Below, piece by piece: positions 2,711 through 31,217 of a stretch of 64,000 bases of DNA. Source of the stretch: Lepidodermella squamata (lineage: Eukaryota > Animalia > Gastrotricha); the NCBI GenBank assembly GCA_047495785.1, contig JBLDXI010000103.1, positions 1 through 64,000 on the forward strand, written 5' to 3'. A model generated the notes under the pieces. That model saw only the letters and a program-made list of their open reading frames with translations. It was not told the origin of the DNA and did not search any database. The stretch's first letter is position 1. Each line of letters begins with the position of its first letter. Made by a program: the position numbers and the translations under genes.

Positions 2711-3467
2711 CATCTAATTCGGATTTTAGGGCATTTGTTTTCTGTTAAGAGCGAGTTTTATTACCCGCTAAACTTTCCTCGGGCGACGACAATTAGCGAT
2801 CGAATTTCCCAATGTCAAAGGCGTCAACAAATTGGGGTCCATGCCGTGTTTACGTAAACAACATACGGCTTAAGCGTAACTTAATGTAAGACCACTTGAA
2901 TTGTGAATTGGATTCGATTTGAACATATATTTGGACCTTGTCTTTGACAGAGAGCAGGCAATTTCTTCTTGCTTTGACGGAACAGTCGCTCGACGCTCTG
3001 GTCTCTGCTTAACTGTATACTATTGAAAGCGATATGTTTGGTCACTTGACTGGTTCATCCTGCCTGGGAGCAAATTGCCAATCAAGTAGCAGGGAGACCC
3101 GAGCTAAACAAATCTTAGTCGAAATTAGCATGAAAAATCCGGAGTAGGGCCCCTGCTGTTTGGTCAAAATTAAGTTCATTCAAATTGTCCAGGCCAACTA
3201 CTTTAAGTAGTTGATGTTTTGTGGGGTAAAAATAGATTGCTGCTAATCTCAATTCATTAACGCCATAAGCAGACACTATACCAATTATCTATCTGGACAA
3301 ATCTAAGATAAAAAAGTCATAAAACCGCATCATTCGTGTAACCTAGAACACGGACAGTGAACGTGGTTTGTCCATGGTATCCCGTACACATTTTTCAGGT
3401 CAAGCGGACAGAAATCTTCGAAAATTTCGAAAATTTATCAAGTTTTTCAGCTCCAAATAGAGCTGCT

Positions 3468-3908
3468 ATGCCATCTCTCAGATCAGTTATTTTGGTAATG
3501 TTGACATCAACCGCAATTCTAGCGACCCAAACCGAAAGCTCCAGTAAACTACTGAAATTCCTGAAAGGTTGGCTTTTTTAAATTAGAGATTGTCAAATTT
3601 GAGATTGTTTATCATATCATGTTAAAAAAGGCTTTTAAAACGTTTTCCGCTTAACAGGAAGCCTCAAAAAGCAGCTTATTGTTGAGTTGGCTCGGGTACC
3701 AGGCTATTGGCGAAAGGCATTGGGACAACTTCGCTATCGGGTACTTCAAAAGCTCCGCATGGACCACTGCATGGCCTTGCTACAGTCTCGAGAAGTCTGT
3801 CGCGATGAAGGCATTTTCTTCGTTTGGGCGAGGGTCGTTGCGAAGGACATCATGGCCGGAAAACACGATAAATACGTTCTCGCTGATGCTGCCTCAAAGC
3901 AATACTAA
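3468..3908 (+). CDS. Family-A secreted cationic helical protein, copy 1 (116 aa; exons 3468-3567, 3658-3908)
   Basis: Signal peptide MPSLRSVILVMLTSTAILA; phase-1 GT-AG intron at K-G; conserved LRMDHC-x9-CRDEG...WAR..AKDIMAGKHDK. Confidence 0.85.
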
Positions 3909-4586
3909 AAGCCTGAAATTGTAATTATAGATTATTTTAATTCGTGTTTAGGATCAAAATGATAGCGAACATACATAATCTCTCCTCTCTATGAAAAGTC
4001 AACAACGGTAATTATCCAGGGAATGTTATGAATTGCAATTTCAGGCCATTATTTAGCGGAACCTAACTGTTGCATGACTTGCAATTTAGAGCAAAAATCA
4101 AGTTTAGCAAAAAATCGAGGTACACAATTAGCCATTCTGTTTAATCCTGTGAAATACTTATTTCAATTTTCAATTACTGTTTGTTTTGAATCACTGCGTG
4201 ATTCTAGGGTATTGTGAATTCGACTTCTGGAGCTGTTAAAATATTCTAAATCAGACTTGGGCGAATTAGGCTCTGCACATTTTTGAGCACCTGTACAATT
4301 TTCAATGTATCGTATCTTACTGCCGTTTCCGCTAAGCGATTACCTATTTGCACATTTAAAGTTCCATTTAGTCATTTGAATTAATTTACAACTTCATAAC
4401 GTTTCCGTTGCACACCGATACATCAATAAAATAAAGTTTTATTGTACCAACATTTTCTGCTTCGCTTTGTCTTTTGCCCAATATCGATCAACAATATTTC
4501 TCTAAGAGTAATAAATGAGACTGGAAAAGACCGATGTTGGATTGATCCTGAGCCTTGAATCTGATTCATTTCGGAGAATCGGCTGA

Positions 4587-7297
4587 ACTCATTGAAGAAA
4601 AGCTACTCAGGACTTCGATGGGATATATTATGCCTACAATTAGAAACAGAGATGGCTTTAGTTAGCGAAAATTCTCCGCATGTCATAACTTTCAGTTCAG
4701 CTGAATAAGGGCAAAGCAGAGAAGTGCCCGGCTAATCGCATCAAGACAATATATTGAGCTAGCGCTAATGAGAAAAAAGTTATCATAACACGATAATGCA
4801 AATATGACAGGCATTGGACGTGATCTAAATCTGTAATCTGAATCTGATTCAGAATCATCCTTAATTGCATGTCTTATGTCTTATGTGTCTTATGCTTCCA
4901 CGTAAAATCAACATCATGGCTTGTTGAAGTGCGTGGCTATATGACATGTGATGTAAGTTACAAAATCACCGTAGCTAAGAAAGGCACGCCGCAAATCCGG
5001 AACCATTTCACGGAGCTACCGATCAAAACAACCAGCTCACGCGACTCAGCAAATCGTCATCAGTAGCAAGTGGCATTATGGTGTCAAAATTTCCTTGGGA
5101 TAGCAAGCAAAAGCCTATTGAGCCCTACCACCGGCTAGTAAAATCGGTAGACACCTGGAATGAGCTCCCACAAACTTGCTTCCCGAAACATGTTGATATC
5201 GAACGCTTCAAAAAGAGTGTGGATGCCCTAGGCAGCACCTCATCACCGTGATAAACTCAGCCGAATTTTTTGCGTAAATAAAAAAGTACTTGAATGTAAC
5301 TACAGGTAACAAATTCTGAAATTACATAAAATTAATCTGCCGATCGTGAGCTAATTTTATCATCAATCAAAAAAAGCCATTACAAATTGGTAAGAATTGC
5401 AGATATCGCAAGAGCGAGAAGACCCGATTGAATGCCGGTCACCGTGGCATGGTAGTACGGATTATGGTCTTCCAGCGGACAGTTAAAATCAGTCTCCGAT
5501 GACATGATGCTGGACAAGGCCGCTGAGCTCACGGTGTCTAGCGAGGACGAAATCTGCTGAGCGGGTATCGTGAACTCTCCCGTCCCGTTGAAGGCCTGGC
5601 TGCGGAGGGTCGTCCGATCGTGCCATAGCATCTTAGTTTCAAACTGAGAACCCCAGACTGGGGCAAATCGAACCTGATCAGCCGTAACGGTATAGTCGAA
5701 CTCGCCAGTGAAGAAGTGCAGCGCGGTTACTTCAGCCGGCAAGCTCGGTCTTTGAATGTCGGTGGGCGCGGATTCGACTTCGACGCGTTGTAGTGATAAC
5801 CTTCAAATTGTTCATTATAATCTGATTCGTTGGGTTGAATCGAAAGTCAGCCGGCGAGCGCGTTCCAACGTTGCGTCCGAGGCAGCGTCGCGAGGCATAC
5901 CCGCTAAGCACCGCATGTAGTTCCAGTAATTTATAGAGAGCTGGCGATGGCGGGGAAGACAAACAGCTCCTGCTCATGCGTAACATGGCCACCGAAGTCA
6001 ATGCGCGCGTTTTTGCTAGAATTTCCCCCACGACCTAGACCACACGCTGAGACGCCGTAAAAAGACTTATCTTCGGCGGTCCAATCAGCCGCATACATGG
6101 TCATGCCGTAGCGGTCGGGAAACGGGAATTGGCTGTAGAGCTGGTACAGAGTCGACTTGATCATGCGGCGCAGTTCAGCAACTTTGGTGCCGGTTCCTAA
6201 TAAAATAACAATTTGAAACCTCACTTTTCGATCTCATAGGATCTCTATAGCTCGATACAATGTGGGTCTTAGTTGAGAATTTAAGTAATTACCTTCAACT
6301 TCGATCGATCCAGCCTTGAAACGCTTTTCCCAGGCTGTATTGTGTGTATTCAAAATCGAAGTTAAATCGTACGACTGGGCGTGGAACTCCTTGAACTCGT
6401 CGAGAGCGGACTATTCAAACCATGTGAAATTTGTTTTGAATTTGTTAAATGATTCCAATTATACCATCTTGTCCTTCGCTGGTGCGACGGTTTGAAGGAT
6501 GACCAGATCTGACTGGGACGCGCCCTTTTCGAATTCGATGTGCAAGTTGGTAACGGCAGATGAGGTAATTGGGCTGTTGGAGTACATGACTATCTCCGAA
6601 TCGCTGCTGTCCGCGGCGCTATTTACGCTGACTATTCGTTGGCTAGACTTGAACGTTGAAACCATTTTTGGCATTAATCTTCAAAACATGTTTACAAGGC
6701 ATCGACGCCCTCTATTACAGGGATATGCTCTCGCTGTGCATTCAGATTGAGATCTTCACTGAAATACTTGTCTTCCAACAGTCGAACGTGATGCGTCGAC
6801 AGCGAAAACGTTTTCGTTGTGCGGAACGGCTCGCTCGTTTACAAATCACGCGGATTGCGTGGAAAAATGAGCGCGAATAAAAAGCGTGGATACCCATTAT
6901 TGAACGGATGTGGAAGAGCGGGGTGTCAATCGTCTCTTCCCAAAGTGCATTCGTGTAATTGAAGTAAAACGATCGCTTCGAGTCATCGCTCCAAGTCGCG
7001 GTCGAGTCATCAGGTTGATCTGAATCTGTCCGAATCTCACATGTTCGATTGACTTTTATACGAAAACCCTTATGCCGAACATCAAATGCCCGAATGAATT
7101 TTGTCTGTTTTTGTCAGGGTATAAATGAGGTCCAAAGACGCCTCTATAAGCTAAAAGCAGCGACCTTGCGGCACTTCCGGGTCAACGCAGAACAGCAGAA
7201 ACACGAAACACGAGCGTCATGGCTGGCTACGTCGCCACGAGGACAACCCACACCCCCCTCCCACTTAACAGATGGACCAGGTTCAAGCTCTGAGTTG
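4587..7297. repeat. Right arm of inverted duplication 1
   Basis: Mirror of 1-2710; the spacer 2711-4586 is not palindromic. Confidence 0.97.
5380..6897 (-). pseudogene. Mirror copy of the decayed GH65/PGGHG-like gene
   Basis: The extra G keeps FYGVSACGLGRGG...GGHVTHEQELFVFPAI in frame (cf. the GH65 motif GHVFWDQxxWMFP); a stop follows. Confidence 0.5.
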
Positions 7298-7440
7298 GAA
7301 CAACAGACTTCGAAGGATATTAATCTTATTTTAATTTCGGTCAGATGACATCCGAACATATGGCTTTTCGTTGACCGATTTTTGTGGGGTTGAAAATACC
7401 GTTCGGACAAATGAGATTCGGACATTTGGGTGAACGCGGG
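7010..7440. mobile_element. Possible MITE-like element
   Basis: Inverted GTCCGAATCTCA motifs near 7028 and 7410-7422; ends and TSD unclear. Confidence 0.3.
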
Positions 7441-8220
7441 TCAGTTGCGCGGCTGATGCGGATCATGGCGTAGTTTGGGATCCGAACCCTAGTCACGAAT
7501 GACCGGTCATTTATGCTGGCAGTGCGGTAAAGACCGGCCAAGTATAAGGATTCCTATTAAAACATATGTGAATTAATTTTAACTCATCGTTAATAATTTA
7601 GTCAAAAATTTCGCAAAAAAAAATCATGACTATCGTTAAGCAGAACCTAATTTACGGAGTGCGGAACCAAATATGCATTTTGCGAAACCAACGTCAAAAT
7701 AGCCAAGGGTCATTTTTTCAACAATGACTTCTGATTCCGCTCACCGTAAATTTGGCTCCAGTAAAAGGAGGACCCAAAAACTTATTTACATTGTAAACTG
7801 TGGTAGCGAGGATACCAGACGACAGCTCGGGAAGTTCTCGAGAATTGTAAATCGTCATTTGTAAATCGTTATTATTTATTTATCATTTATCCAGAAGCTA
7901 TTACACCCAAAGAGGGAAGCTTGACAAAGTATAAGGAAAACAACATATAATTGCAGGACAGGATCACATTTAGGACAGGAAAGGTGTTGTAGAAGAAACA
8001 AAGTTATAGAATTAGGATTAGAAATACACGCCAATGTGTATATAATATAATAATGATAGGTAATAGTAAAAATCGCAACAATAGTGTAATAAAACAAAAC
8101 AGCAGCATTTCAGCAGTATAAAAATAAATTGTATTCAATCAGGTCCATTTCAGTATCAGGAATTAAAGTATACAAATCACAACAAAGTGTATCAAAGTTA
8201 AACCAGATCAAAAATGATGA

Positions 8221-8532
8221 TCACTGGGATAATTTAGCGGCATTCATTCCGTAGTAGTACTGGTAAACTACCTCGCGACTTATTGCTCGAATTAGCCCAT
8301 ACGCCCCCAGGTAGCCTATATCGTGGAGTTTTCATTGGAGTTGGTAAATGCGACAGCTATTGATTTTCAACTTACATTGACGCCATGATCAGGTCCTCGT
8401 CGGGGTTGGTCGATAGAGACTCATCTTCACTCTGCTGCGCTAACGATGACGCTGCAAAAAGCGCCAAGACGAGAAAGGAACGCCTGAAAAGCAATCAATT
8501 GTGATTCAATTTTTGAATTCCACGATTTACAT
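8221..8532 (-). CDS. Small putative secreted protein (about 3 exons)
   Basis: Split ATG (8532-8531 plus exon 8483-8376) gives MRSFLVLALFAASSLAQQSEDESLSTNPDEDLIM; next acceptor at 8316; frame of the last exon is ambiguous. Confidence 0.45.
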
Positions 8533-9233
8533 GGAAATCGGCTACGGTATGACAGCAGTTACTTGGAAAAGCTGAAAAATAAAAACAAGAGCACTACCCT
8601 CTACTGCCTACAGAACGAGTGACTGCAATAATAATTGGAAGAAAGATTGCTGATAAGTTGCTGCTCTCAAACATGGACATGCATAGTAAGGATTATCGCC
8701 AATCAATGGGCTTTTTTTATTGCATAACACTTTTACTATTATTAGTTTGCTTTGGATACCTAATTTTTTCAGTTAAGGCATAGCTGCTATAGCATGCATC
8801 GTTTTGAGCTGTCTGTGATTCATAGCGAAGTCCGGTGTTTTATTACAGGGGGATAAGGTTGCTTTCGGCTTCGGCCCACAGTTTTCGCCAACTAAGCTAC
8901 TTTAATGTAAAATGGATGAAAAATGTAAAATGGCAAAGGTATCAAAATTAGAAGTTTGAAGGAAGAAGTTTCCATGGCTAAATCAAGATGAATGAAATCA
9001 AAAGTTCACTTATTGGGCTAAAAAGCTCATTTCAAATCTATATGGCAAATGGCAATTAAGTTACCAAAATATCACACCAACACAAGTGAAAGTTTGATGG
9101 ACACATTAAAAGTTCTGAATTTCCGAACACAGCCTGCTTAATATTCGCTTCAAAGATTCTGAAGATGCTACACACATTTATTTTCAATGGTGAAAGAATA
9201 CAAAATGAGGATGTTAGCAATCAAGCTAAGCTT

Positions 9234-10637
9234 TCAATCAAGCAAAGGCTTCAGCCCACCAACAAGCGATTCATAGCATGGCGGCATTGGCCCATAGTCA
9301 TACATAACACTGTTGTAGTTCGGCGACATCTCTACAGGCACTGCAACAGGCATAGGCCGTTCTCCAAGGCCCCAAGCTCCCTCGCCAGTCCATCTTACAG
9401 CTTGCAAAATACCTTCCGTCTTCACCTGATCGAAAACCACATCACCCTGGGGTCGCCTTGGTATAGTCCCGATAACTACTGGGAGGTACACTTTCAGGTC
9501 GAATGATCTGGGAACAATTAGGCCGATTTCGACGTGGTAGTTCACGCAGACCAGTGGTGAAGCGATTGAAGGAGCTACTGCAGGCAGTTTGAACGGAATT
9601 TTCTCCCATTCGGCGACGTTGTCGATTAGAGGCTTAAGTAGCTGAGCTGGCTTAAATGGCTCCATTGGCGTCATTGGGTAATCCTTAGAAGCAACGTGCT
9701 CGGACCCTGTATCAAAGCGGAAAGGTTCTGAATTTTTGCGAATCAACGGCCTAAATTAGTCCAACCTCCTTTTTCGCGCATCACTTGGCGCTGGACTAAT
9801 TTGACGTAGGGCTGAACTCCATGCCGCGAGCGATTGATCAATGTACCACTCACCAAAACAATGTCCTCTACAATACATAAATCAAGATAAAACACATTCA
9901 AAGCCAAGGAATTTACCTGGGCAATAAGCGGCTCTATCGGTTTGGCCCTCGATTCTCAGCGGACCTTCGGTGCACAGCCCCCAGCATATCCTCTTCGCAT
10001 CTTCGGCCAAAACTGGAAACTAGAATTATCGGACTTTGATTAGAGTGAAGCAGAGATAATCGCTAAATTGATTACGTCGTACTGCATCAAATTGATGTCT
10101 ATTAGTTGCAGAACTTTGATGGAACTATCGGTCATTTTTATATCCTCCTCTTCGAAGGGAGAAGTTGCTTCGAGCCAATATCGAACGTAGCCATGTGGCC
10201 CCTCAAATGACGCGCTGAGACTTACGAAAGCGAAATTGATAATGAAGTTAATGAAAGAAGTTCTTACTTTGAGGGAAGGTGAAATGTGAACGGAATCAAT
10301 GAGATTCCATGCGTGATAGCTCCTTTGATCTCGGTTATTGCGAAAACAAAACTCTGAGATAATGCAAGTACTTACCATGAGGAATAATGACTTCTTGAGG
10401 AAGGCGCAGGAGTTCTTTGGTTTCATGATACGTTATGGTGATGGTTTCGTTAACGCCCCCGCTTTGATTCGAGTAGGTCTCAGTCCAATAGACCCGGGAC
10501 TTTCCGATTAAAGTCACGGTTATGCTCTTTAGAGGTAACTTGCCCTTAGCTATGATTTCACAGTAGCCATGAAGCAGCTCCCCGGCGTAGTAAAGCGTCT
10601 TTTCTTTGATGACGACAGAAATCGAGTCCAAAGACAT
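9234..10637 (-). CDS. Alpha-arrestin (arrestin domain-containing protein), multi-exon
   Basis: YYAGELLHG, SASFEGPHGYVRYWLEA, CTEGPLRIEGQTDRAAYCPG, LPVVIGTIP and a C-terminal PPxY (PPCY); one junction near 9730-9770 is unresolved. Confidence 0.85.
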
Positions 10638-11228
10638 GTTTGGGATAGAAAAAATGGCAATTTTCTATAAATTATGCTGATGTCAAACTGTTGTTGTTTT
10701 TGAACGTGATTTTTGCTGACTGAAAGACATTAATCGCGATAAATCTGGCGCAGCTTTCCCTTAAATCGCGTCACGAAATAACGCACATGTCAATATTGGT
10801 CAAAAATCACGAGGGGTTTTATTTTTCCTGTAATTTCGGTTTCAAAATAAATAGGTCGAAAGGCTGCTTCACTTACACAGCTCAATAACTGCCTTGAAAC
10901 CGGTACAATTCCTAATGGACAAAAGATGAATTGTCCACCTGCCCATCACGTGATTCTACTTTCATACCACGCTGATGCACGCATGTAGCAAAATAAATTA
11001 ACCCTGGACCCCGGATCAAATCGTGCGAAAAATATCAAATGCACCATTATTCCGATTTATTTGTCATAGATTGCCTTAATACATCGTTTATATCACCAAT
11101 CACCAAATCACTGGGAACATGGAAGACTTGCAATCATTACAAGAGGTGGAATAGATTGGACTAGGTCTCTGATCACGAAAGCTCTTGAATGTAAGTTCGG
11201 TCAATTTCGAATTGTCTCTCAGCAGAAT

Positions 11229-12033
11229 TTACTGGCGCTTGTACTTGCGGACGCTCTTAACGCCGTTAGCCTCGCACTCGGCGATCATGAGGTCACCCTC
11301 GACCCAGCGGGTGAAGTTTGAGTTGACGTCACCCTTCTGGGTCTGCAGCAGCTTGCCATCGCTGGTCAGCGTGAAGGTCGACTTGCATTTGCGGCCATCG
11401 GGTGTCTTCTCGTCGAACTCAACATCGAGGTCGAACTCGGTGGTCGAAGTGGAAACGGCGGATTCCTGCTTCATGATGATGTGGTTGCCGTTCACGGTGA
11501 TGACGATGGTCGGCTTCGACGAGTCGGCGATCTTGCGGACAGCCCAGCTGACGCCAACCTCTGAAAATCAAAATCGAATTATAATCAGTAACAAGAACAA
11601 AAAGGTTTTATTTGATAGTGAACATTAATAGGGTTAGGGTTAGGGTTAGGGTTAGGGTTAGGGTTAGAATTGGGATTAGGATTACCTTTAGGTTAAGACT
11701 GTAGTTAAGAGGGTATTAGAGTTAGGGTTGGGGCTAAAGCCTGGCTTAGTCTGGACTTAGTCCTAGGGTTAAGGGTTGAAGCCTGGATTCTGCTTAGGGT
11801 TAGAGTTATAATTCAAATTGCCTGTGACAGTGCCTCAAGCTTTACGAGTGTGTTCATGATTAATTAGATTTAGGATTAGGGCTAGGATCAAGATTAGTCA
11901 GATGTTTTTAAACCACATGGGTCACCAATTAGAGGGGCTTTTCATACAGTGTATAATAAAATTTCTTACCCTTCATGTAGGCATCGAAGTTCTCCGACGA
12001 CTCCAATTTCCAGGTACCAGCGAACTGAGACAT
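11229..12033 (-). CDS. FABP: Fatty acid-binding protein (iLBP family), 131 aa; exons 12033-11970, 11560-11229
   Basis: [31 protein letters not shown]...EFDEKTPDGRKCKS...SVRKYKRQ; canonical splice sites. Confidence 0.95.
11629..11890 (+). repeat. Interstitial telomere-like (TTAGGG)n in the FABP intron
   Basis: About 6 perfect units at 11629-11667, then degenerate units (TTAGAG, TTAGGA, CTAGGG). Confidence 0.9.
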
Positions 12034-12222
12034 TTTGATTGATGCTTAACTCGGAATTAAGTTTTCTCTAAAAATAAAGAAAAATTCTTAACAGTGAATT
12101 AAGCTTTGTTTTAAGCAAAAATTAGCACATAGATAGCATTTGATTGTACGTGTTTTCGTTCCAACATTGATTGGGAGGTTTCAACACTGATTTAAAGTCA
12201 ATCACATTATTTTATGAGCTGC

Positions 12223-12361
12223 TCACGCACGCTTGTACTTGCGAGTGCATTTAACTTTGTTGCACTCGCAGGTAACAATCAGGTAATCGCCCTCAACCCA
12301 TCGCTCGAAGATGGTGTTGTACTTGCCACGCTGGTCGTGGATCATCTTCTCGCCCTCCATG
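12223..12361 (-). pseudogene. 3' fragment of a second FABP, cut at the inverted-duplication junction
   Basis: Reads MEGEKMIHDQRGKYNTIFERWVEGDYLIVTCECNKVKCTRKYKRA*, aligning with the neighbouring FABP C-terminus (RWVEGD, RKYKR). Confidence 0.85.
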
Positions 12362-13366
12362 TCTATCGCTCGAAGAAATGTTTAACAAAGGAGTTTTAGG
12401 CACAGTTGAGCTCAAAGTGCTGGAACACGCCATTGCCGACTACAACGCTAGTCAAAATTGGTCCGAAAATTTCGACTCAGCGCTTTTGAAATCAATGGCT
12501 GGTCGAATTGCTGCATTATTGTGAATAATTTGATGATTGCTTCAATTATGGATCGTCTGTTTTGTTTGATAATAAAATTCATATAATTAGCCTGGTCTGT
12601 TGTATCCAAGATATAAGCTCCGTGGACCATAAAAACGCGTGATGCATGTCAGGACAATTCAGAAGGATTGTCCGCACAAGAAACACCCGCGGACATCATA
12701 AACTCGGATTACACGTTCGGGGACACCTAATTTGGTAAATCAGGCATTAAAAGTGCGTGAAAAATCAGGTCGACGCAAGATGGTTTAGTCTTGGATTCCG
12801 GGATCAAAATGTCGGCTGTGTCTTGTGTTAATGAGTCTACAATTCAAAGGGTGAAACTGCTACTTGAGTTCAAGATTTGGAACTGGTCATTTGATAATCA
12901 ATCACCGTGACCATGTTCAGGACTGTCTTTGTTAAGTAAGTAGGATAAGTTTTAGCGGGGGCCTTTTGAATTTTCAAAAGGTTTTTTGAGACACTGCCAT
13001 TTCGAAGAAAACGCACCTGGAAATTCCCAATATTTATACATTTACATTTGATGCTGATAACTTGAGAAGCATTGTTCAACCACGTGCTTTTAGTCTGGGT
13101 AAGGAATTAGTTGCCAGCGAAATGACAGAGTGACACGCGAAGCTTCAAGTCAAAGTGTCCGAAGTCAACCACTGGAACTGAGTTGTAAATAGGTTACTAA
13201 CTTGAGCTTTTTATCATCGCCCACATAGCCTGAGCAAATTAGCGGAAAATCGCGGTTAAACGCCATGACGTGTTTTATTGCGCATTTAAAAGCGAAAACA
13301 TTGCTTCTGATATTCCGGTAAACTAAACAGATTTCGAGCCATAAAATCAACTTCAATAAACCTGCT

Positions 13367-13756
13367 ATGCTACTTCTCAACGTGGTTATTCTGCTCTTGT
13401 TAACATCCAATGTAATCCTAGCGGCTCAAGACGAAGGTCCTAGAGAGCTGCAGGCCCTGAAAGGTTTGTGTGAATACGTACCCTTAAAGCTAATACATTA
13501 AATTGTTCAATAAATAGGAAGCCTTAAAAGGCAGCTCTTGGTTCTGTTGGGTCGGTCGCCGGACCTCTGGCGAAAACTGCCGCGTAAACTTCGAATTCGG
13601 GTACTGAAAAAGCTGCGAATGGAACATTGCATCGCTGTTCTAAAGTCTCGAGAATTCTGCCGAGATGAAGGTTCTTTTTACGTCTGGGCGAGAACCATTG
13701 CGAAGGAAATCATGGCCGGCAAACACGACAAGGACGTCCTGTCCCACAAACGCTAA
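13367..13756 (+). CDS. Family-A protein, copy 2 (111 aa; exons 13367-13463, 13518-13756)
   Basis: MLLLNVVILLLLTSNVILA signal; same intron position; LRMEHC-x9-CRDEG...AKEIMAGKHDK. Confidence 0.85.
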
Positions 13757-16310
13757 TTCGAAGCGAAAAAAACTACAGGCCATACTCATCACAAAACACT
13801 GACAATATTTGTGGATGAATCACCTTCTTTCAATCATCTGTGTGAATAAAATTTGTCAATTTTTCACAATGGAACAATTAAGACACCAACCATTTGTTAT
13901 TGATGGTATTGAATTATTTTGAATCTTTCCAATCGCGAGGAAATTGTAACATGGCTACAGAAGTGGCAGAGAGGCTGCGTACGTTTGAGCTTTCGCCGTT
14001 TGCAGTCAATAAATTAACTTGTTATTCTCTCAGTTTCCAGGTATGTCAGAAGTCACATGTCTTCGACATATTTTTCAAGTTAGTTTTAAGCAAGTAAGCT
14101 GATTAAATTAAAATACGACTGTAATCACCCAAAAACAAACTTGAATAAGCCTTAATCCGACGTATTCAAGCGGTCTGGGGAAGTTTACGACAAGTAAAAA
14201 TGCCTGCACACAAAATATGAGACTGTTCAAATGCCCCTTTCCGGCAATTAGTCGGCGACTCTTTTTATAATATCCATACATTTGATAATTTAGACAATTT
14301 CAACCTTGAAGTTGTTCTTGTGATGAGAAGGAAATCAGTTGTCATGTAAGCTGGCACAAGCGCCCAATTTTCTCCGCCTGTAGCTTCGGAATGATCTGGA
14401 ATGTATATATGATCAAACGAGTCATTACCCTTGTGGCTGAGAAAAGAGGTACATATCAGAAGGAAATCACTAGACCTAGGAATCGATAGTTCGCGCGGAA
14501 ATATAAATGGAAAAATATCCGTCCAAAATGGCTCATTTCATGACCTAATGTCGATCGAATAAGCTGAATCGCTGGCATCGATCATCGATCCCAATATTTC
14601 ATACATATGAAGGGTCAAAGTCCTAGAATCTAACCCAGTTGCTATTTTAGATCTACCCAAGATCTCATTTTCATGGGATGGGATGCTGAAACTCGTTCGA
14701 TCTTGTATCATCTATTACATTACTTTATTACAAAGTGATATACAAGCTATTAGTACGTAAAATAATCTTTGCATAAGGCGTTAACCAATTCCAAGCACCA
14801 AATCAGACGGCTGAAATCAGACTTGTTTCTTGTACTTATGAAAGAATGCGCACATTTTCAGGCCGGAATATGTGCACAGAATACAGACAGGGTGCGTAGT
14901 ACAAGGGTGATGGGATGTCGCAACACTACAGCCCCAGGACTCTAACCAAAGAAAACTTAAAATACCACAACGGGAACCCTTTGGTTTCTTCGGCTGGGAG
15001 CTAGAAAGCAATACAGTTCCCGGGTCCTACTTCGCACACTGAATACAGATGAAAAAAGTGAAACAATGATTTTGAGGATTTTGAGTCCGAAATGATTGTT
15101 CTTTTCTGTTAAACAAGTTTTCTTGTTATAATGAAGCAATAATATCTCTTTCGCAATTGTACCATCCTGATTTTATCGTCTCATTCGGGGAGCAAAATTG
15201 ATGGAAGAAGATTTAGCTCTCATTCCTTTTTAAATAAAGCCATCTAAATATACAGAGCAGTAATGATTATGAAATAAATGGTATAGTAGTTTTTGATCTA
15301 GCGAGCAAAGTGAGCAAATTTTTAGCAAAATCAACAAAAAATACGCTGATCCGATTAGAATAGTTATTTTCTATTTTCCGTTTTTTACTGGGTCGATATG
15401 GTTGACTGCCATCGACCAAACCTACATGCATACATAACGAACTACGAACAGCAGCAATCTAACAGCTTTTTGCTACACTCAGTCAGTTTCTTGCGACGTT
15501 CGCTAAGCCACCCTTTATAAATTGTCTAAATTGTACCTTAAAATTCAAAAAGGTGTTTATGCATTCTTTAACCTTACAGGAAAACTTCACATGTCGTTTT
15601 TGACCTCAATCATAAAGGGGAATTTTGCGTGTACGTAAGATGTTCAAAATTTTTACCGGATTACGGTATTGCTATTTTTAAGCCAATGAATATCCGAATG
15701 GCTGCTCTATTGTCGAAAACGGAAAATTAATTAGTCCATGTTCTAAATATAAAATAGACTTTCTGAAATAGATATACTCAATTCACACCGGCTAGTGATC
15801 GTACCCTATAAAAAGATTATTATTCCCGAATACAAGGAAGAAAATTCGATGTACATTTGACAAGGTGTCAGTCGTTTCAGTACATGGAGGAAGGTTTGTC
15901 CACCTAAGTTGGAACTCAGTTGCACCTCCTTGAACACGCACAACAGACATGACCCGAATTTTCATGATAAAGGGCGTTGAAAATAATTGAGTGATGTTAT
16001 CTTAGACTTAACAGTTCAGCAATTGTCCGTTGCAAATCGAGCCTAAGTAAAGCTTTTCGCCGATTGTATGTTGATTCGCAATGATTTAGAAGGAAGGGTT
16101 ATTTTCCAGGCAGTTGCTGAGACATTCTGTCCACGGTCTAGTAGGCTGTTTATCCTGCATAGGTTGAGCGGAAAAACATTGCCTTCGCAAATTAGCAGGG
16201 TTGCACACCATGACACTTTTTTAAGCCCATTCGTTTCCTTTTGGAATTCGAATTAAGTGATATTCAGCTATAATAATACAAGTTTCATCTCAGCTTAGAA
16301 TAAAGCCGTT

Positions 16311-16641
16311 ATGCTACTTCGTGAAGTAGTAATTTTGGTATTGTTATCATCCACAGTTATTCTAGCGACTCAGACGGAAAGCTCCAGAAAATGGATAAAA
16401 TTCCTGAAAGGTTAGTTTTTCGTTTTTGCTTTTGTTCATAATGCCATTCTGATGGTTTTGAAAGTTCAAAATTGTAGAGGTTTTTTCATATTTCAACGGC
16501 CAAGTTCAACGGCCTAAAAATTGCTCCGCAGACACGAATTTTATTACTAGGCAAACGGTGAATCGTCAACGAACTAATATCTTATTCACCTAACAGGAAG
16601 CCTCAAAAAGCAGCTCAAAGCTTTGCTGGGTAGGGTTCCAG
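16311..16641 (+). pseudogene. Family-A protein, copy 3, truncated in exon 2 at the arm end
   Basis: Exon 1 16311-16410; exon 2 from 16597 (GSLKKQLKALLGRVP), then unrelated sequence. Confidence 0.85.
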
Positions 16642-16718
16642 CCAGGAACCGAACAACGCCGATGTGGCCGTTGGCAGCGGCGTTCCAAAGCGGTGTTATT
16701 TCGTCATTATCTGCCGTA

Positions 16719-18665
16719 GATACGGTTGCTGGGTTGTATGGCAACTGAGCAACTGAGCAACGAAAATTGGGAATACGACTATTCGACAGCGACAATTCAG
16801 CAAACGTCAATTCGGCAAGATTTTTTTATACGATTGAAAACGACAACTCGGCAAACGACTACTCGGCAGTGAAAATCAGTGTGGTATACGGTTATAACCA
16901 CGGTTTTAACTAGCCGGTTATAACCGAGTTTTAACCGGTCATTTCAAAATTCGTTTTAACCAACTGTCGTTTAAACTCCCTAAATCCCAGCTGATTTTGA
17001 TTTGAAAATTTGAATTTGAATTTTGAATTTCGATCGCCATGTTGATCGGCTTATAAATCCAGCATATTACATGGCTGATTTCAACCCCAGCTGTGGACCC
17101 CACCTTGGGGACGAAAATATTAATGAGAAAGAAGTGTCAGCTTGCTCGCGATGGTCTTCTCGCAGCTGATCTCGCACCAGGTTCCGTTGACTTACTGAGA
17201 GCCGAATGCCCCTGTTTGTAAGGTGGTCTCGCAGCTGGTGTTGACATAAGAGCCTTGTTTCTAGCTCAATCACACATCATACATGACTCGTCAATTCTCA
17301 AGGTATTTACACAGTAATTAACCTCTTAGTCCTGTAGGTATTTACTCGAAAATCAAAAGTCGAAAATTTGCCTAACCTTCTGGGGTTTAGTGACAGTAAA
17401 TAACGGGTGTGACCTGCAACTCCTGCTCAACCTCGCAGCAAATAATCCCATCTAATCCTATTTAATTCCAATGCGCCAAAAAGCACTGAGCTAAAGAATT
17501 ATCTCGACTTTAGACCTCATCTGGGCGGCCTTGAAGAACAGGCTGTCGCTAGCAACTGTCAATAAAATTGTTTGTTTACCAAGGATTTATGCGAGGCGAG
17601 CAGCGTTCGTTGAGCGCGAAAGTGAAAGCAAATAAACAGCTCTTTTCAAAATTTAGGTGGAAGAAACACCTATCATAATAATTTTCGAAGGGGACCTTGA
17701 ACTGAAAACATTGCTATCGAGGAAATTGATGTATTGTTGGCCCTAGAATTTGAGTGAACTAATGAGTGAGCCTTCTAGTGTAAATTATGAATAAAAACAA
17801 CTCTTTTCGATAACTTTTGATCAGGTTTAGTAAAAACTGGTTGAAACCGCGGTTTTAACTGAGTTAAAACCAAAAGTTGGTTAATTCCGAATTAACTTAG
17901 GTCAATATACCACACTGGTGAAAATTCATCGTACCCTTCAGCAACAATTCGGTAGAAGACAACTCGACAATTCACTAACACTATAACGACAACTCAACAT
18001 TAGCTATAGATTGGGAAGTGTTGAGAGCCACATCGCGCATAAAATAACCGTCAGATAAACTTTTCAAGCCTGTCGGAAAAACCAGGGTTGGAATAGGGGA
18101 ATTTGTGATAATCATTTTGAGAAAATAAAACATCCAACTTAACATTTCACGAAAATTATTCTTCGTTGTAAAAGAAAATCACTTTTCATTCGGCGAATTT
18201 TTTCTTGTTTGCAACTTGATTTTGGTCAACCTTCATTCGTCGGCGAAATTTTCCTGCTGTCCGGCTGGCCGAAGAATCAGTAGTCAAGAGTCATGGAACA
18301 GAACGCCGATATCAAGCCCCGATCATCAAGCCAAGATTATCAGTTGCCTTGGTTCGATGGAGTCTTGAAACGGACAACTCGTTGCCTCGATGAAGAAGCC
18401 ACTCAAACCGATTACCAGCCGGTTTCGCACAGAAATCAATGCATCGCGCCGTCTGGATGAAGACTGACAACAATAAAAGCCATCCGAGCTCGCTGCATGG
18501 TATCTAACGGTATTCAGGTTGCGGCGGAAATTAATCCTGGATATGGGTGGATTTTGCCGGTCGAAGACTCGCCGCGAGAAACCAGTCATTGTCGCGTCTA
18601 ATGTTGCTATGGCTAGTCGCTGAATTTCTGCGTTGTCGCTGAAAACTGCGAATCAGGAGGGAAAC
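16719..18665. mobile_element. Unclassified ~1.9-kb insertion hosting a nested MITE
   Basis: CCGTA direct repeats at 16714-16718 and 18666-18670; subterminal CGACAA(C/T)TC repeats; it interrupts the ankyrin frame. Confidence 0.5.
16877..17917. mobile_element. Non-autonomous hAT-like element
   Basis: 12-bp TIR CAGTGTGGTATA, perfect 8-bp TSD GTGAAAAT, subterminal GGTT..AACC repeats. Confidence 0.88.
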
Positions 18666-19187
18666 CCGTATCTGCATCGCGACAGCTGCCAGCAAGAGAT
18701 TTCGACGACCTCGTTTTTCGCCTCATTCCGCCTCATTTTGTCAAATTTGTATCTTTGCACGTGAAATTGCTTTTAAATAAAATTGAGGTTTTCGTTGGCT
18801 CCGCATACACAGAGCACTGAAAGTAAGAAAACAGCTAGACTGATAGAGATTGAGGCGCATCCTTAGAATTCATAAGAATATTCATTCTGCAATTAAACGG
18901 TAAGGTTATTGCAAAAACAAAAATGACAAACGAAACGAAATCTATGTGTTTTCCTTTGCCTTCTAATTAAAAATTCAATAATTCAATAATTCAACTACAA
19001 CATCATAACCTATATCAATATCAATGATATAAAAAGACAAAGGCGAGGGCATAGGGCAGATGGGCGCTTGTCGAAGACAGTGCACTGCGCTGCGCCGCGA
19101 GAGAGGCGGCACGTTATATCCAATTTATCACTGACAGCGTATTTATCACTGTTAAAATATAAGTAAATGATATTCTATAAATCAGCT

Positions 19188-19571
19188 CTAGTGAGACATA
19201 ATGTCTTTATCGTGCTTGCCGGCCATAATTTCCTTTGCCTTAGATCGTGCCCACACGTAGAAAGAACCTTCATTTCGGCAGATATCTCGAGACTGTAAAA
19301 CAGCTATGCAATGTTCCATGCGGAGCCTCTTCAGTGCCCGAATTCGGAGGTTTCGCGGCAGCTTTTGCCAAAAGTCCGGTGACTTACCCAACAGAGCCAA
19401 AAGCTGATGTTTTAGGCTTCCTTCAAATAGAGACCATAAGTTGCATATTTACTACTTTTTGAAAAACAAACCTTTCGTGGCTTGTTTGAGTTTCTTCGAT
19501 CCTTCATTCCGAGCAGTTTGGATTATACAGGAAAGTATTAGGACTACAATAATTACTCTGTGAAACCGCAT
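19188..19571 (-). CDS. Family-A protein, copy 4 (110 aa; exons 19571-19472, 19420-19188)
   Basis: MRFHRVIIVVLILSCIIQTA signal; same intron; LRMEHC-x9-CRNEG...AKEIMAGKHDK. Confidence 0.85.
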
Positions 19572-21102
19572 ATCAGCCTTGTTTGAGTTGATTGTGTAGC
19601 GCCGATACGTTGATCAATTATTCAGAATTTCTAAAATGAAAAAATGTTGACGATTACTAAGCTCGTAACTTTCTTTCAGATTAAATTGCAAACGTCTGTT
19701 TTCCGTCACTTTACTGGAAACTAATTTGGCATAACTACGTCTATCCGCGCTCAATTAGAATTTGAGGAGCACGATTTGGCTTGAAAACGGAAGCCCATAA
19801 ATTCCTAAGTCTCGTCTGTAAGGCGATACGTAGTGATCAGATAGCGGAAGGATGAGCATAAAAAACGGATGCTCTAGTTACGTGGCTGACTTGGCAAAGA
19901 TTCAAGAAGTTTCTTGAATGTTTTCGCCATTAGTTTATATTCTTGGCGATTCTCGTTCTGCCGCCCACCGCCTACCCCGCAATACGCTATATAAAACTCA
20001 TACTTTCGATCATGCAATCCTGCAATCATGCAAAAAATGAGTCCTTGATTATGAGCAATTCCTTCTGATTTATCTAATCTTTTGAAATTGATCGATGCAA
20101 TGTGAGATGTTTCTTCAGCAATTTTTCTTTCTTTACTTGATTTTACTTTAGCTTTTCTATCTTTTGGGTTTCAGACCTTTAGGTTGCAAGATAGCTACAA
20201 TTGCAGTACAAATACCTCGACAACCACGACATTTCATTAGGTTAAAATTTCCGATAAGGTGGATAGCTCATTCGTGCCACCGGTCACTATAGTAAGTAGG
20301 ATACTACATGATAGAAAAATGCAGGCATGGTGAAATTTTCAGGAAACGATAGAGCGGAATAGCGCATTCACTGAGAAAGAAATAAAAAATGGCCGATTTC
20401 ATGAAACGTTCTCTATGCCACTGAGAGAGTGGAGGTCTCAGCCATCACAGATCATAGCAGGGTCTTGTCTCGGGCTCTATTCTTGAGGCAGCTCACTTCT
20501 TGATTGGTGACGGCCCATGGCGCTTTGGTTTCATGGGCTGCAAAACCTGAGACTCAAAACCCGAAGTTTTCTTTATCGAAATTTACGATACACTATGTAT
20601 TCTGGATGATAGCTCTATTATAGGCCTATTTTGAAGGAAATAAGAACTTGCCGCGACTCGGACTGTGACTTGTGACTTCATTTTATTTGTAGAAAGGATT
20701 GGAGAGAGATAGACTTCGCCCACATAATATCACCTCAGATTTTTCGAAGAAAACATATATTTTGGCCCTTGTTGGGATCATCTTTGTGCATAAACGTTTT
20801 ATTGTGTTGATTTATGGGTGCGCGAATGTATAGTTGCAGAAATTGCATGCAAACAATGTAATCAAAGCTGTAGCGACAATAAATGAAACTGAAAAAATTA
20901 AACACAGAGGTGAAATTTTAATCGCTTTGCGTAAACCTCAGGAAGACACCGCCGGTACAAAAAAACAAAAGAATTACTCTGAACAACATCTTCGTCGATA
21001 GACCAATGAAGGGGCCAATCTACAGACAGGAATACCATCTTTCATTTTTCTATCGAAGATTTTCAGTATATTTTGGGTAACTTGGTATTTTCTAAAGCAT
21101 CA

Positions 21103-21621
21103 TTAGCGAGACAGAACATCTTTATCGTGTTTCCCGGCCATGATTTCCTTCGCAAATGATCTCGCCCAGATGTAGAAAGTACCTTCATCTCGGCAAACGT
21201 CTCGAGAGTGCAGAACAGCGATGCAGTGGTCCATCCGAAGCTTCTGAAGTAACCGGTCGCGAACTGTCGGCGGCAGGTTTCGCCAGAAGTCTGGAACCCT
21301 ACCCAGCAAAGCTTTGAGCTGCTTTTTGAGGCTTCCTGTTAGGTGAATAAGATATTAGTTCGTTGACGATTCACCGTTTGCCTAGTAATAAAATTCGTGT
21401 CTGCGGAGCAATTTTTAGGCCGTTGAACTTGGCCGTTGAAATATGAAAAAACCTCTACAATTTTGAACTTTCAAAACCATCAGAATGGCATTATGAACAA
21501 AAGCAAAAACGAAAAACTAACCTTTCAGGAATTTTATCCATTTTCTGGAGCTTTCCGTCTGAGTCGCTAGAATAACTGTGGATGATAACAATACCAAAAT
21601 TACTACTTCACGAAGTAGCAT
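21103..21621 (-). CDS. Family-A protein, copy 5 (110 aa; exons 21621-21522, 21335-21103)
   Basis: MLLREVVILVLLSSTVILA-TQTESSRKWIKFLKGSLKKQLKALLG...; intact across the arm boundary at 21291. Confidence 0.87.
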
Positions 21622-24600
21622 AACGGCTTTATTCTAAGCTGAGATGAAACTTGTATTATTATAGCTGAATATCACTTAATTCGAATTCCAAAAGGAAACG
21701 AATGGGCTTAAAAAAGTGTCATGGTGTGCAACCCTGCTAATTTGCGAAGGCAATGTTTTTCCGCTCAACCTATGCAGGATAAACAGCCTACTAGACCGTG
21801 GACAGAATGTCTCAGCAACTGCCTGGAAAATAACCCTTCCTTCTAAATCATTGCGAATCAACATACAATCGGCGAAAAGCTTTACTTAGGCTCGATTTGC
21901 AACGGACAATTGCTGAACTGTTAAGTCTAAGATAACATCACTCAATTATTTTCAACGCCCTTTATCATGAAAATTCGGGTCATGTCTGTTGTGCGTGTTC
22001 AAGGAGGTGCAACTGAGTTCCAACTTAGGTGGACAAACCTTCCTCCATGTACTGAAACGACTGACACCTTGTCAAATGTACATCGAATTTTCTTCCTTGT
22101 ATTCGGGAATAATAATCTTTTTATAGGGTACGATCACTAGCCGGTGTGAATTGAGTATATCTATTTCAGAAAGTCTATTTTATATTTAGAACATGGACTA
22201 ATTAATTTTCCGTTTTCGACAATAGAGCAGCCATTCGGATATTCATTGGCTTAAAAATAGCAATACCGTAATCCGGTAAAAATTTTGAACATCTTACGTA
22301 CACGCAAAATTCCCCTTTATGATTGAGGTCAAAAACGACATGTGAAGTTTTCCTGTAAGGTTAAAGAATGCATAAACACCTTTTTGAATTTTAAGGTACA
22401 ATTTAGACAATTTATAAAGGGTGGCTTAGCGAACGTCGCAAGAAACTGACTGAGTGTAGCAAAAAGCTGTTAGATTGCTGCTGTTCGTAGTTCGTTATGT
22501 ATGCATGTAGGTTTGGTCGATGGCAGTCAACCATATCGACCCAGTAAAAAACGGAAAATAGAAAATAACTATTCTAATCGGATCAGCGTATTTTTTGTTG
22601 ATTTTGCTAAAAATTTGCTCACTTTGCTCGCTAGATCAAAAACTACTATACCATTTATTTCATAATCATTACTGCTCTGTATATTTAGATGGCTTTATTT
22701 AAAAAGGAATGAGAGCTAAATCTTCTTCCATCAATTTTGCTCCCCGAATGAGACGATAAAATCAGGATGGTACAATTGCGAAAGAGATATTATTGCTTCA
22801 TTATAACAAGAAAACTTGTTTAACAGAAAAGAACAATCATTTCGGACTCAAAATCCTCAAAATCATTGTTTCACTTTTTTCATCTGTATTCAGTGTGCGA
22901 AGTAGGACCCGGGAACTGTATTGCTTTCTAGCTCCCAGCCGAAGAAACCAAAGGGTTCCCGTTGTGGTATTTTAAGTTTTCTTTGGTTAGAGTCCTGGGG
23001 CTGTAGTGTTGCGACATCCCATCACCCTTGTACTACGCACCCTGTCTGTATTCTGTGCACATATTCCGGCCTGAAAATGTGCGCATTCTTTCATAAGTAC
23101 AAGAAACAAGTCTGATTTCAGCCGTCTGATTTGGTGCTTGGAATTGGTTAACGCCTTATGCAAAGATTATTTTACGTACTAATAGCTTGTATATCACTTT
23201 GTAATAAAGTAATGTAATAGATGATACAAGATCGAACGAGTTTCAGCATCCCATCCCATGAAAATGAGATCTTGGGTAGATCTAAAATAGCAACTGGGTT
23301 AGATTCTAGGACTTTGACCCTTCATATGTATGAAATATTGGGATCGATGATCGATGCCAGCGATTCAGCTTATTCGATCGACATTAGGTCATGAAATGAG
23401 CCATTTTGGACGGATATTTTTCCATTTATATTTCCGCGCGAACTATCGATTCCTAGGTCTAGTGATTTCCTTCTGATATGTACCTCTTTTCTCAGCCACA
23501 AGGGTAATGACTCGTTTGATCATATATACATTCCAGATCATTCCGAAGCTACAGGCGGAGAAAATTGGGCGCTTGTGCCAGCTTACATGACAACTGATTT
23601 CCTTCTCATCACAAGAACAACTTCAAGGTTGAAATTGTCTAAATTATCAAATGTATGGATATTATAAAAAGAGTCGCCGACTAATTGCCGGAAAGGGGCA
23701 TTTGAACAGTCTCATATTTTGTGTGCAGGCATTTTTACTTGTCGTAAACTTCCCCAGACCGCTTGAATACGTCGGATTAAGGCTTATTCAAGTTTGTTTT
23801 TGGGTGATTACAGTCGTATTTTAATTTAATCAGCTTACTTGCTTAAAACTAACTTGAAAAATATGTCGAAGACATGTGACTTCTGACATACCTGGAAACT
23901 GAGAGAATAACAAGTTAATTTATTGACTGCAAACGGCGAAAGCTCAAACGTACGCAGCCTCTCTGCCACTTCTGTAGCCATGTTACAATTTCCTCGCGAT
24001 TGGAAAGATTCAAAATAATTCAATACCATCAATAACAAATGGTTGGTGTCTTAATTGTTCCATTGTGAAAAATTGACAAATTTTATTCACACAGATGATT
24101 GAAAGAAGGTGATTCATCCACAAATATTGTCAGTGTTTTGTGATGAGTATGGCCTGTAGTTTTTTTCGCTTCGAATTAGCGTTTGTGGGACAGGACGTCC
24201 TTGTCGTGTTTGCCGGCCATGATTTCCTTCGCAATGGTTCTCGCCCAGACGTAAAAAGAACCTTCATCTCGGCAGAATTCTCGAGACTTTAGAACAGCGA
24301 TGCAATGTTCCATTCGCAGCTTTTTCAGTACCCGAATTCGAAGTTTACGCGGCAGTTTTCGCCAGAGGTCCGGCGACCGACCCAACAGAACCAAGAGCTG
24401 CCTTTTAAGGCTTCCTATTTATTGAACAATTTAATGTATTAGCTTTAAGGGTACGTATTCACACAAACCTTTCAGGGCCTGCAGCTCTCTAGGACCTTCG
24501 TCTTGAGCCGCTAGGATTACATTGGATGTTAACAAGAGCAGAATAACCACGTTGAGAAGTAGCATAGCAGGTTTATTGAAGTTGATTTTATGGCTCGAAA

Positions 24601-25570
24601 TCTGTTTAGTTTACCGGAATATCAGAAGCAATGTTTTCGCTTTTAAATGCGCAATAAAACACGTCATGGCGTTTAACCGCGATTTTCCGCTAATTTGCTC
24701 AGGCTATGTGGGCGATGATAAAAAGCTCAAGTTAGTAACCTATTTACAACTCAGTTCCAGTGGTTGACTTCGGACACTTTGACTTGAAGCTTCGCGTGTC
24801 ACTCTGTCATTTCGCTGGCAACTAATTCCTTACCCAGACTAAAAGCACGTGGTTGAACAATGCTTCTCAAGTTATCAGCATCAAATGTAAATGTATAAAT
24901 ATTGGGAATTTCCAGGTGCGTTTTCTTCGAAATGGCAGTGTCTCAAAAAACCTTTTGAAAATTCAAAAGGCCCCCGCTAAAACTTATCCTACTTACTTAA
25001 CAAAGACAGTCCTGAACATGGTCACGGTGATTGATTATCAAATGACCAGTTCCAAATCTTGAACTCAAGTAGCAGTTTCACCCTTTGAATTGTAGACTCA
25101 TTAACACAAGACACAGCCGACATTTTGATCCCGGAATCCAAGACTAAACCATCTTGCGTCGACCTGATTTTTCACGCACTTTTAATGCCTGATTTACCAA
25201 ATTAGGTGTCCCCGAACGTGTAATCCGAGTTTATGATGTCCGCGGGTGTTTCTTGTGCGGACAATCCTTCTGAATTGTCCTGACATGCATCACGCGTTTT
25301 TATGGTCCACGGAGCTTATATCTTGGATACAACAGACCAGGCTAATTATATGAATTTTATTATCAAACAAAACAGACGATCCATAATTGAAGCAATCATC
25401 AAATTATTCACAATAATGCAGCAATTCGACCAGCCATTGATTTCAAAAGCGCTGAGTCGAAATTTTCGGACCAATTTTGACTAGCGTTGTAGTCGGCAAT
25501 GGCGTGTTCCAGCACTTTGAGCTCAACTGTGCCTAAAACTCCTTTGTTAAACATTTCTTCGAGCGATAGA
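21291..25570. repeat. Right arm of inverted duplication 2
   Basis: Mirror of 12362-16641; intact genes cross both of its ends. Confidence 0.97.
24176..24565 (-). CDS. Family-A protein, copy 6 (identical mirror of copy 2)
   Basis: Reverse complement of 13367-13756. Confidence 0.85.
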
Positions 25571-30894: not shown

Positions 30895-31217
30895 TTTCGT
30901 TATTTTCGCGTAAAGAAGCGAAATGTGGATTGCTGCGCCTACCATATGTATGTAATATTATGGCGATATTATGCGTCTGGTTATTAAATCTTCTGTAAGA
31001 AGAGTTAATCTCTGCGAACAAATGCTGCGTTCTCAAAGATGGTAGCGATGGTCATAACGACCGTTTATGAAGATCCTATCTAACATCTATTCCTTCGCAC
31101 TTTGGAAATGTTTGGAACATCTTTCATATCGAATTTCATACCTCACGTATCATTTCGCTCATATTAGCCGATTGATTCATCGAGCGTGCTACGGCTCTAT
31201 ACAAGGAAACCGAGTAA

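Follow-up and report, generated by a model that had tools for sequence, protein, structure and literature searches.

A conserved, multi-copy family of predicted small secreted proteins at a palindromic locus of Lepidodermella squamata

What kind of protein is encoded by the small two-exon genes that lie between positions 3468 and 24565 of contig JBLDXI010000103.1 of the gastrotrich Lepidodermella squamata (assembly GCA_047495785.1), and how did their copies come to sit in two inverted duplications? The window analyzed here is the whole stretch from position 1 to 64,000 of this contig, and the two duplications are referred to as palindrome A (1–7297) and palindrome B (12362–25570). An original prediction, made from the letters of the window, had proposed an unrecognised, lineage-specific family of secreted cationic helical proteins that was amplified by inverted duplication and acts as an antimicrobial, cytolytic, toxin or gamete-interaction effector. 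The copies very probably represent a real, expressed-type gene family of secreted mini-proteins and, on sequence comparison, the family is conserved, old, multi-copy, undescribed and missed by annotation. Its relatives extend to other eukaryote-like contigs, and the function tentatively favoured for it is that of a cationic effector of the host-defence type.

Gene models and coding evidence

The locus holds five intact two-exon genes, comprising four distinct sequences and one exact mirror, and one truncated mirror, with 3468 and 24565 marking the outermost start codons of the cluster. The same inventory had been proposed before, and tblastn, a family hidden Markov model (HMM) and reading of the sequence agree on it. 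Five related open reading frames (ORFs) of about 70 residues are seen in the window, at 3687–3908 (+), 13538–13756 (+), 19188–19400 (-), 21103–21309 (-) and 24176–24394 (-), and the ORF track displays exon 2 alone and not exon 1. Searching with the translated pieces of the first copy (tblastn) returned these five ORFs, their exon 1 partners and a 5' fragment near 16311–16652, and the family HMM applied to the six-frame translation of the 64 kb detected exactly five intact cores and no further copy.

All copies follow a common model of an ATG, an exon 1 of 97–100 nt, a GT...AG phase-1 intron (90, 54, 51 or 186 nt) and an exon 2 of 233–251 nt ending in a stop, for a precursor of about 110–116 residues per gene. 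The junction is the same throughout, with a Gly codon split as G|GA and followed by Ser-Leu-Lys, as had been read from the sequence at the outset (K|G-S-L-K). No in-frame ATG precedes the core within exon 2, so that exon 1 is required.

The first copy, c1 (3468–3908, +; exon 1 3468–3567, intron 3568–3657, exon 2 3658–3908), is intact and occupies the spacer of palindrome A, with its conserved domain at about 3720–3860 (+; family HMM, 84.6 bits). In the left arm of palindrome B, the intact c2 (13367–13756, +; exon 1 13367–13463, intron 13464–13517, exon 2 13518–13756) carries the domain at about 13580–13720 (+; family HMM) and is the exact mirror of c6, while c3 (16311–16641, +) is a mirror of the 5' part of c5 that consists of exon 1, the intron and the start of exon 2 and stops at the end of the arm. 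This single break makes c3 a truncation, and the family HMM found no conserved core in it. The spacer of palindrome B contains the intact c4 (19188–19571, -; exon 1 19571–19472, intron 19471–19421, exon 2 19420–19188; domain at about 19218–19358, -, family HMM, 91 bits). The intact c5 (21103–21621, -; exon 1 21621–21522, intron 21521–21336, exon 2 21335–21103; domain at about 21133–21273, -, family HMM) straddles the inner end of the right arm at 21291, and the intact c6 (24176–24565, -; exon 1 24565–24469, intron 24468–24415, exon 2 24414–24176; domain at about 24212–24352, -, family HMM), identical to c2, lies within that arm.

Evidence that the copies are coding comes from the pattern of divergence between them. 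The exon 2 translations of the four distinct copies share 38 invariant columns out of 82 in the alignment, among them the entire core motif that had been quoted as invariant. Synonymous divergence (dS) between paralogues is 0.70–1.07, and the ratio of nonsynonymous to synonymous divergence (dN/dS), a comparison that had been suggested as a check, is 0.16–0.42 over the 75 gap-free codons of exon 2, falling to 0.10–0.20 in the core (codons 31–75) and ranging from 0.29 to 1.07 in the more variable N-terminal part (codons 1–30). Exon 2 is 73–81% identical between paralogues at the nucleotide level, whereas the 150 nt upstream and downstream are 57–66% identical, the level of random sequence; intron identities from global alignment were set aside because unequal lengths inflate the values. 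Conservation is thus confined to the coding frame and selective, and exon 2 is under purifying selection.

Several copies in both orientations, together with a reverse-transcriptase fragment elsewhere in the window, would also be expected if the repeated units were parts of a transposable element and not host genes. This is very improbable given that the similarity between paralogues ends at the exon ends, that selection acts on the coding frame, that no terminal repeats are common to the copies, and that the relatives described below are individual small genes for secreted proteins and have introns and promoter-like boxes of their own.

The 12 nt preceding the start codons (3456–3467, 13355–13366, 19572–19583 and 21622–21633) differ little between the four paralogues, all of which have a purine at -3. 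This stretch is non-coding, since c5 has an in-frame stop there. A pattern scan for poly(A) signals gave inconsistent results among the copies.

Distant relatives

The proposal that the family is lineage-specific did not survive a wider search. When 1.84 billion representative proteins were scored with a profile made from the exon 2 translations of the four distinct copies, 27 proteins matched at E<=1e-3 (E values from 1.9e-11 to 1e-3), one of which (P0024) is a false hit to a repeat-rich protein without the motif. These distant relatives share the architecture of the window copies, in that nearly all are 100–150 residues long, begin with a hydrophobic leader and have the domain 11–20 residues from the C-terminal end. 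The relationship is reciprocal, since a profile built from the relatives alone recovered the five window cores at 67–71 bits and nothing else in the window. A word-indexed single-sequence search with exon 2 of c2 found nothing, and JGI metagenome contigs scanned with the window profile and the profile of the relatives yielded pattern matches only and no relative.

Across 45 non-redundant domains, the four window copies included, two Cys, one Phe, one Trp and one Ala are invariant in fixed spacing (45 of 45). Other positions are strongly kept, including an Arg four residues before the first Cys (40 of 44, often in a dibasic context), a loop Ser (34 of 38), an Ile before the second Cys (37 of 45), a Tyr (37 of 45) and a Gly closing the last helix (40 of 45), and the loop is shorter by one residue in seven domains. 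Net charge among the relatives is mostly +4 to +17.

None of the 37 relatives that were looked up is present in NCBI or UniRef and none is named; all come from ENA metagenome or Logan assemblies, and a literature search on the sample accessions gave nothing. Their contigs are eukaryote-like, with genes for V-ATPase A, ribosomal L24e, G-patch, Ras/Arf, EB and LRR proteins. The multi-copy character of the family recurs in these assemblies. At least seven divergent members occur on at least five contigs of one metagenome sample, and local arrays are found in at least three unrelated contigs, including five members within 5 kb (L009, 341–5079; four direct and one opposed) and tandem pairs on L003 and L008. 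Gene structure varies among the relatives. The closest one (P0001) is intronless and sits on a genomic contig with a TATA-like box, some others are likewise intronless, and still others have introns, either behind a leader exon or within the domain itself; in the five-member array, at least three genes have introns at differing places, including inside the domain. Standard gene finding misses the family, with the relatives all found on unannotated contigs and the ORF track of the window giving exon 2 only.

Predicted protein and comparison with known families

The exon 1 translation begins with a hydrophobic leader, about 19–20 residues long and with small residues at its end, after which comes a short stretch that is polar and basic. 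The maximum hydropathy over 11 residues exceeds 2.2 near the N-terminus in all four exon 1 pieces of the window and in most full-length relatives. The short basic stretch after the leader is variable and crosses the intron. The predicted mature products are 90–97 residues long with net charges of +10 (c1), +12 (c2), +13 (c4) and +10 (c5), as a numerical sum over the separate exon pieces; the charge of about +10 counted by hand for the fifth copy was accurate.

A fold prediction had been recommended for the mature protein, and it returned a confident model. For exon 2 of c5 with the family alignment, AlphaFold2 gave a mean predicted local distance difference test score (pLDDT) of 86.4 and a predicted template-modelling score (pTM) of 0.71, with residues 21–70 above 92. 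The model is all-helical (helices 2–12, 14–19, 22–41, 44–47, 55–65 and 70–75), with one Cys at the end of the long helix and the other in a short turn before the helix that bears the Phe and Trp, so placed that an 11-residue ring lies between helices. The closest relative, modelled at full length, has the same helix layout after its leader.

The matching half of that recommendation, a comparison with described families, returned none. A Foldseek search with the two models gave nothing significant (best E 5.1 and template-modelling (TM) score <=0.40 in the PDB; best E 2.0 in BFVD). Pfam gave no match at E<=1 for the exon 2 pieces and none at E<=0.1 for 28 members, beyond chance level, and the PDB sequence search (best E 0.1) and profile search (best E 2.5) were at chance level. 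No Pfam family, solved structure or named protein matches, in agreement with the initial failure to recognise the family. The models suggest a fold without a neighbour among solved structures, probably a new small fold.

Every comparator tried (cecropin-type peptides, saposin-like proteins, anti-lipopolysaccharide factors, twin-Cx9C proteins, abalone lysin and secretoglobins) fails at least one tested defining feature. Linear antimicrobial peptides of the cecropin and moricin type resemble the present family in their signal peptide, their helices rich in Lys and Arg and their small genes, which have an intron behind the leader and form local multi-copy clusters, but they measure 30–45 residues with no Cys and no folded core, as against 90–97 residues, two invariant Cys and a predicted packed core here. 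Membership of the cecropin type was rejected on the mature length, the two invariant Cys and the lack of a Pfam match. Saposin-like proteins (NK-lysin, amoebapore, caenopore) are also small, secreted, all-helical proteins with stabilising disulfides, often basic and present in several copies in invertebrates, yet the saposin fold has six Cys in a fixed pattern and five helices, compared with two Cys here; with no Pfam SapB match, a best Foldseek PDB E of 5.1 and TM <=0.40, this assignment was likewise dropped.

The anti-lipopolysaccharide factors of crustaceans and horseshoe crabs offer another basic secreted protein of about 100 residues with a single disulfide loop. That loop is a beta-hairpin in an alpha/beta fold, unlike the all-helical model obtained here, and there is no Pfam match to the family, which was excluded as a home for these genes. 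The Cys-x9-Cys spacing beside helices is reminiscent of the twin Cx9C (CHCH) proteins of the mitochondrial intermembrane space, which differ in having two motifs, one per helix, and no signal peptide. A single Cx9C motif, a hydrophobic leader of the endoplasmic reticulum type and the absence of a Pfam CHCH match exclude membership. Abalone sperm lysin and sp18 are basic, helical, secreted and duplicated, and they are Cys-free five-helix bundles under strong positive selection, unlike the core here, which is under purifying selection; the egg-lysin family was set aside with no Pfam or Foldseek match and a dN/dS of 0.16–0.42.

Candidate function

The gene models and the fold prediction allow a mechanism to be proposed. 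Exon 1 supplies a signal-peptide-like segment and exon 2 a domain that is folded and all-helical in the model, with a core made of a helix, a loop closed by the two invariant Cys nine residues apart and a second helix with the invariant Phe, Trp and Ala. Removal of the signal peptide would yield a secreted protein of 90–97 residues with a charge of +10 to +13. A bond between the two Cys would form, and the disulfide-stapled core would provide stability; the basic face would bind an anionic surface outside the cell, most likely a microbial envelope, and the variable N-terminal arm may tune specificity between paralogues.

Among the functions considered, a cationic effector of the host-defence type is tentatively favoured from sequence features, ahead of a signalling ligand. 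Host defence is ranked first because of the charge, the copy number, the dynamics of the arrays and the more variable N-terminal arm, and the placement of the signal peptide on its own exon was also counted in its favour. A number of results weigh against this choice. Neither sequence nor fold comparison links the proteins to a known antimicrobial family (Pfam, PDB, Foldseek), and some relatives are about neutral (net charge 0). The signal peptide was called from hydropathy and the small residues before the cut. The variable N-terminal helix had been described as amphipathic, a description that was not borne out, as hydrophobic moments of 11-residue windows inside exon 2 are within the range of shuffled sequences; the scoring covered the interior of exon 2 and not the helix that crosses the exon junction. 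Upstream of the genes, no motif common to the paralogues rises above chance, no kappaB-like sites were detected, and GATA and TATA patterns occur at chance frequency. Lastly, hormone and ligand precursors also combine a strongly conserved C-terminal domain with an N-terminal part that varies freely.

This last point bears on the possibility, somewhat doubtful but close behind in the ranking, that the proteins are secreted signalling ligands (hormone-, cytokine- or pheromone-like), with the C-terminal domain binding a receptor and the N-terminal part acting as a pro-region or specificity arm. A dN/dS of 0.10–0.20 in the core, the retention of this core with its invariant aromatics in very distant relatives, and the position of the domain at the C-terminal end of a short precursor would all suit a ligand, as would the Arg (40 of 44, often dibasic) four residues before the first Cys. 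The hydrophobic periodicity, however, continues upstream of this Arg, and AlphaFold2 packs that helix on the core with pLDDT >90, which suggests one folded domain and not a cleaved peptide. Amidation is not conserved, given that a basic residue follows the near-terminal Gly in only about 30% of domains. Further, a charge of +10 to +13 and at least seven paralogues per genome are seldom seen in hormones but are not unusual in chemokine-like or insulin-like families.

Being secreted, small, basic and multi-copy, the proteins could also serve in another extracellular role, aimed at neither microbes nor a receptor, as a reproductive component (seminal or egg-coat), in matrix or mucus, or in a venom or digestive secretion, and this set of roles is considered improbable. 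Gamete-recognition and venom families usually have dN/dS near or above 1 in the mature part, compared with 0.16–0.42 here, making roles of these types less likely, and Foldseek against the PDB produced no match to egg-lysin, secretoglobin or known toxin folds. The strong conservation of the core likewise argues against a fast-evolving family of the lysin-type gamete-recognition or toxin kind, two of the roles that had been suggested at first.

Taken as a host-defence family, these genes may belong to an ancient group of disulfide-stapled cationic helical proteins with a neighbourless fold, serving as effectors in poorly sampled small invertebrates, whose copies would be renewed by local duplication and, at this locus, by a gene-converting palindrome. 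This composite picture is more doubtful than the effector function by itself. The family would enlarge the known set of secreted effector and ligand mini-proteins by one sequence family and probably also by one new small fold, and its compact, confidently modelled domain could be traced across neglected animal groups.

Palindromes and the history of the locus

The claim that every copy lies in an arm or spacer of one of two inverted duplications was confirmed when both palindromes were located. Palindrome A has arms at 1–2710 and 4587–7297 and a spacer at 2711–4586 that holds c1. Its arms are about 99.9% identical, differing by one indel in a G-run and two to three substitutions, and the left arm is cut by the start of the window, making its length there a minimum (>=2.7 kb). 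Palindrome B has arms at 12362–16641 and 21291–25570, without a mismatch in 4280 nt, and a spacer of 4649 nt (16642–21290). The confinement of the copies to palindromes is weak evidence of a link between the two, because the palindromes cover about one third of the window and the copies would count as no more than two independent loci.

In palindrome B, the left arm seems to have been copied, inverted, from the right arm, because c5 and an ORF of 302 residues (25408–26316) are whole across the ends of the right arm and the left arm has cut ends only. The left arm adjoins a cut FABP-like fragment (12223–12360) on one side and an ankyrin-like ORF on the other. If the left arm is taken away, c4, c5 and c6 are left as a direct array on the minus strand, at a distance of about 15 kb from c1, and an array of this kind was probably the arrangement that preceded the duplication. 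The family expanded long before the palindromes arose, since dS between paralogues is about 0.7–1.1 and the divergence between arms is about 0. The most likely history would begin with an old local duplication that gave the direct array (c4, c5 and c6) and c1, and a recent inverted duplication would then have produced c2 and the truncated c3.

Amplification by inverted duplication, as originally put forward, applies to part of the family only. The gain from palindrome B was the intact c2 and the truncated c3; no copy was duplicated by palindrome A, which has c1 in its spacer, and the four paralogues predate both. The locus also offers a datable case in which a very recent inverted duplication, cutting three genes, changed the form of an old tandem array.

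Near-identical inverted arms of kilobase length, a unique spacer and genes of an amplified family are also features of palindromes on the primate Y chromosome, in Folsomia candida and in an early assembly of Adineta vaga (PMC5490193). Unlike these, the arms here are short (>=2.7 kb and 4.3 kb), contain at most one intact family member each and are read from the assembly only. Arms without a mismatch and genes cut at the junctions could be found in a real palindrome as well as in an assembly artefact. If both palindromes were artefacts, by chimeric joins or mis-joined haplotypes, the locus would reduce to four genes with no truncated copy. Arm identities of 100% and about 99.9%, genes cut at three arm ends, and a sole length difference between the A arms in a homopolymer run, typical of consensus error, would all be expected in that case. 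We regard it as unlikely, as the unique spacers of 1.9 and 4.6 kb have their own genes, in contrast to fold-back read artefacts with little or no spacer, and as there are documented cases in animal genomes of palindromes that bear genes and in which gene conversion keeps the arms alike (PMC5490193).

Two further observations concern the palindromes themselves. At the inner junction of the left arm of palindrome B (16630–16655), there is a 6-nt inverted microhomology, GGTTCC / GGAACC, 5 nt apart, possibly a trace of template switching or possibly chance. In palindrome A, an ORF of 163 residues is whole in the left arm (1074–1565, +) and split into two frames in the right arm (5732–6224, -) by the G-run difference, which may be either real or a consensus error.

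Other features of the window

Beyond the family, the window contains arrestin-domain, FABP-like, PP1, trypsin-like, ankyrin and short-chain dehydrogenase genes, with the PP1 gene confirmed by a PDB match. Introns of 51–186 nt and a G+C content of about 42% were recorded, and the genome, that of an animal, is compact. Rfam and tRNA scans of the window returned nothing, and three long ORFs of the window that were looked up have no recorded entry. Three trypsin-like ORF fragments and a reverse-transcriptase fragment (RVT_1, below the Pfam threshold) are located at 27103–28069, 36151–36945 and 50801–51142 (+) and at 49031–49828 (-).

Two intronless paralogues at 38975–41302 (+) and 54749–57115 (+) encode 775 and 788 residues, with a ligand-binding region of the ANF_receptor type and a hydrophobic C-terminal half; a word-indexed protein search gave no homologue of the receptor-like ORF of 775 residues at E<=1e-5.

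Four kilobases from palindrome B, at 29584–30945 (-), an ORF of 453 residues has a signal-peptide-like start, long Lys/Gly-rich repeats (a 246-nt unit in two copies) and, at its C-terminal end, a Pro/Arg-rich tandem repeat with a 12-nt unit in about 11 copies (29593–29726). Its product is of the secreted type, very basic and repetitive, and has no Pfam match.

The FABP-like gene at 11229–12360 (-) has its first exon near 11929–12033 and its last exon at 11229–11495, and matches FABP4 in the PDB (E=4e-14). The second FABP-like fragment (12223–12360), a C-terminal piece, reaches only as far as the outer end of palindrome B's left arm, which would fit a gene severed by the rearrangement. Within an intron of the FABP-like gene, an interstitial repeat of the TTAGGG type (11629–11684; 6.5 perfect copies, then degenerate) hints at the telomere motif of the host.

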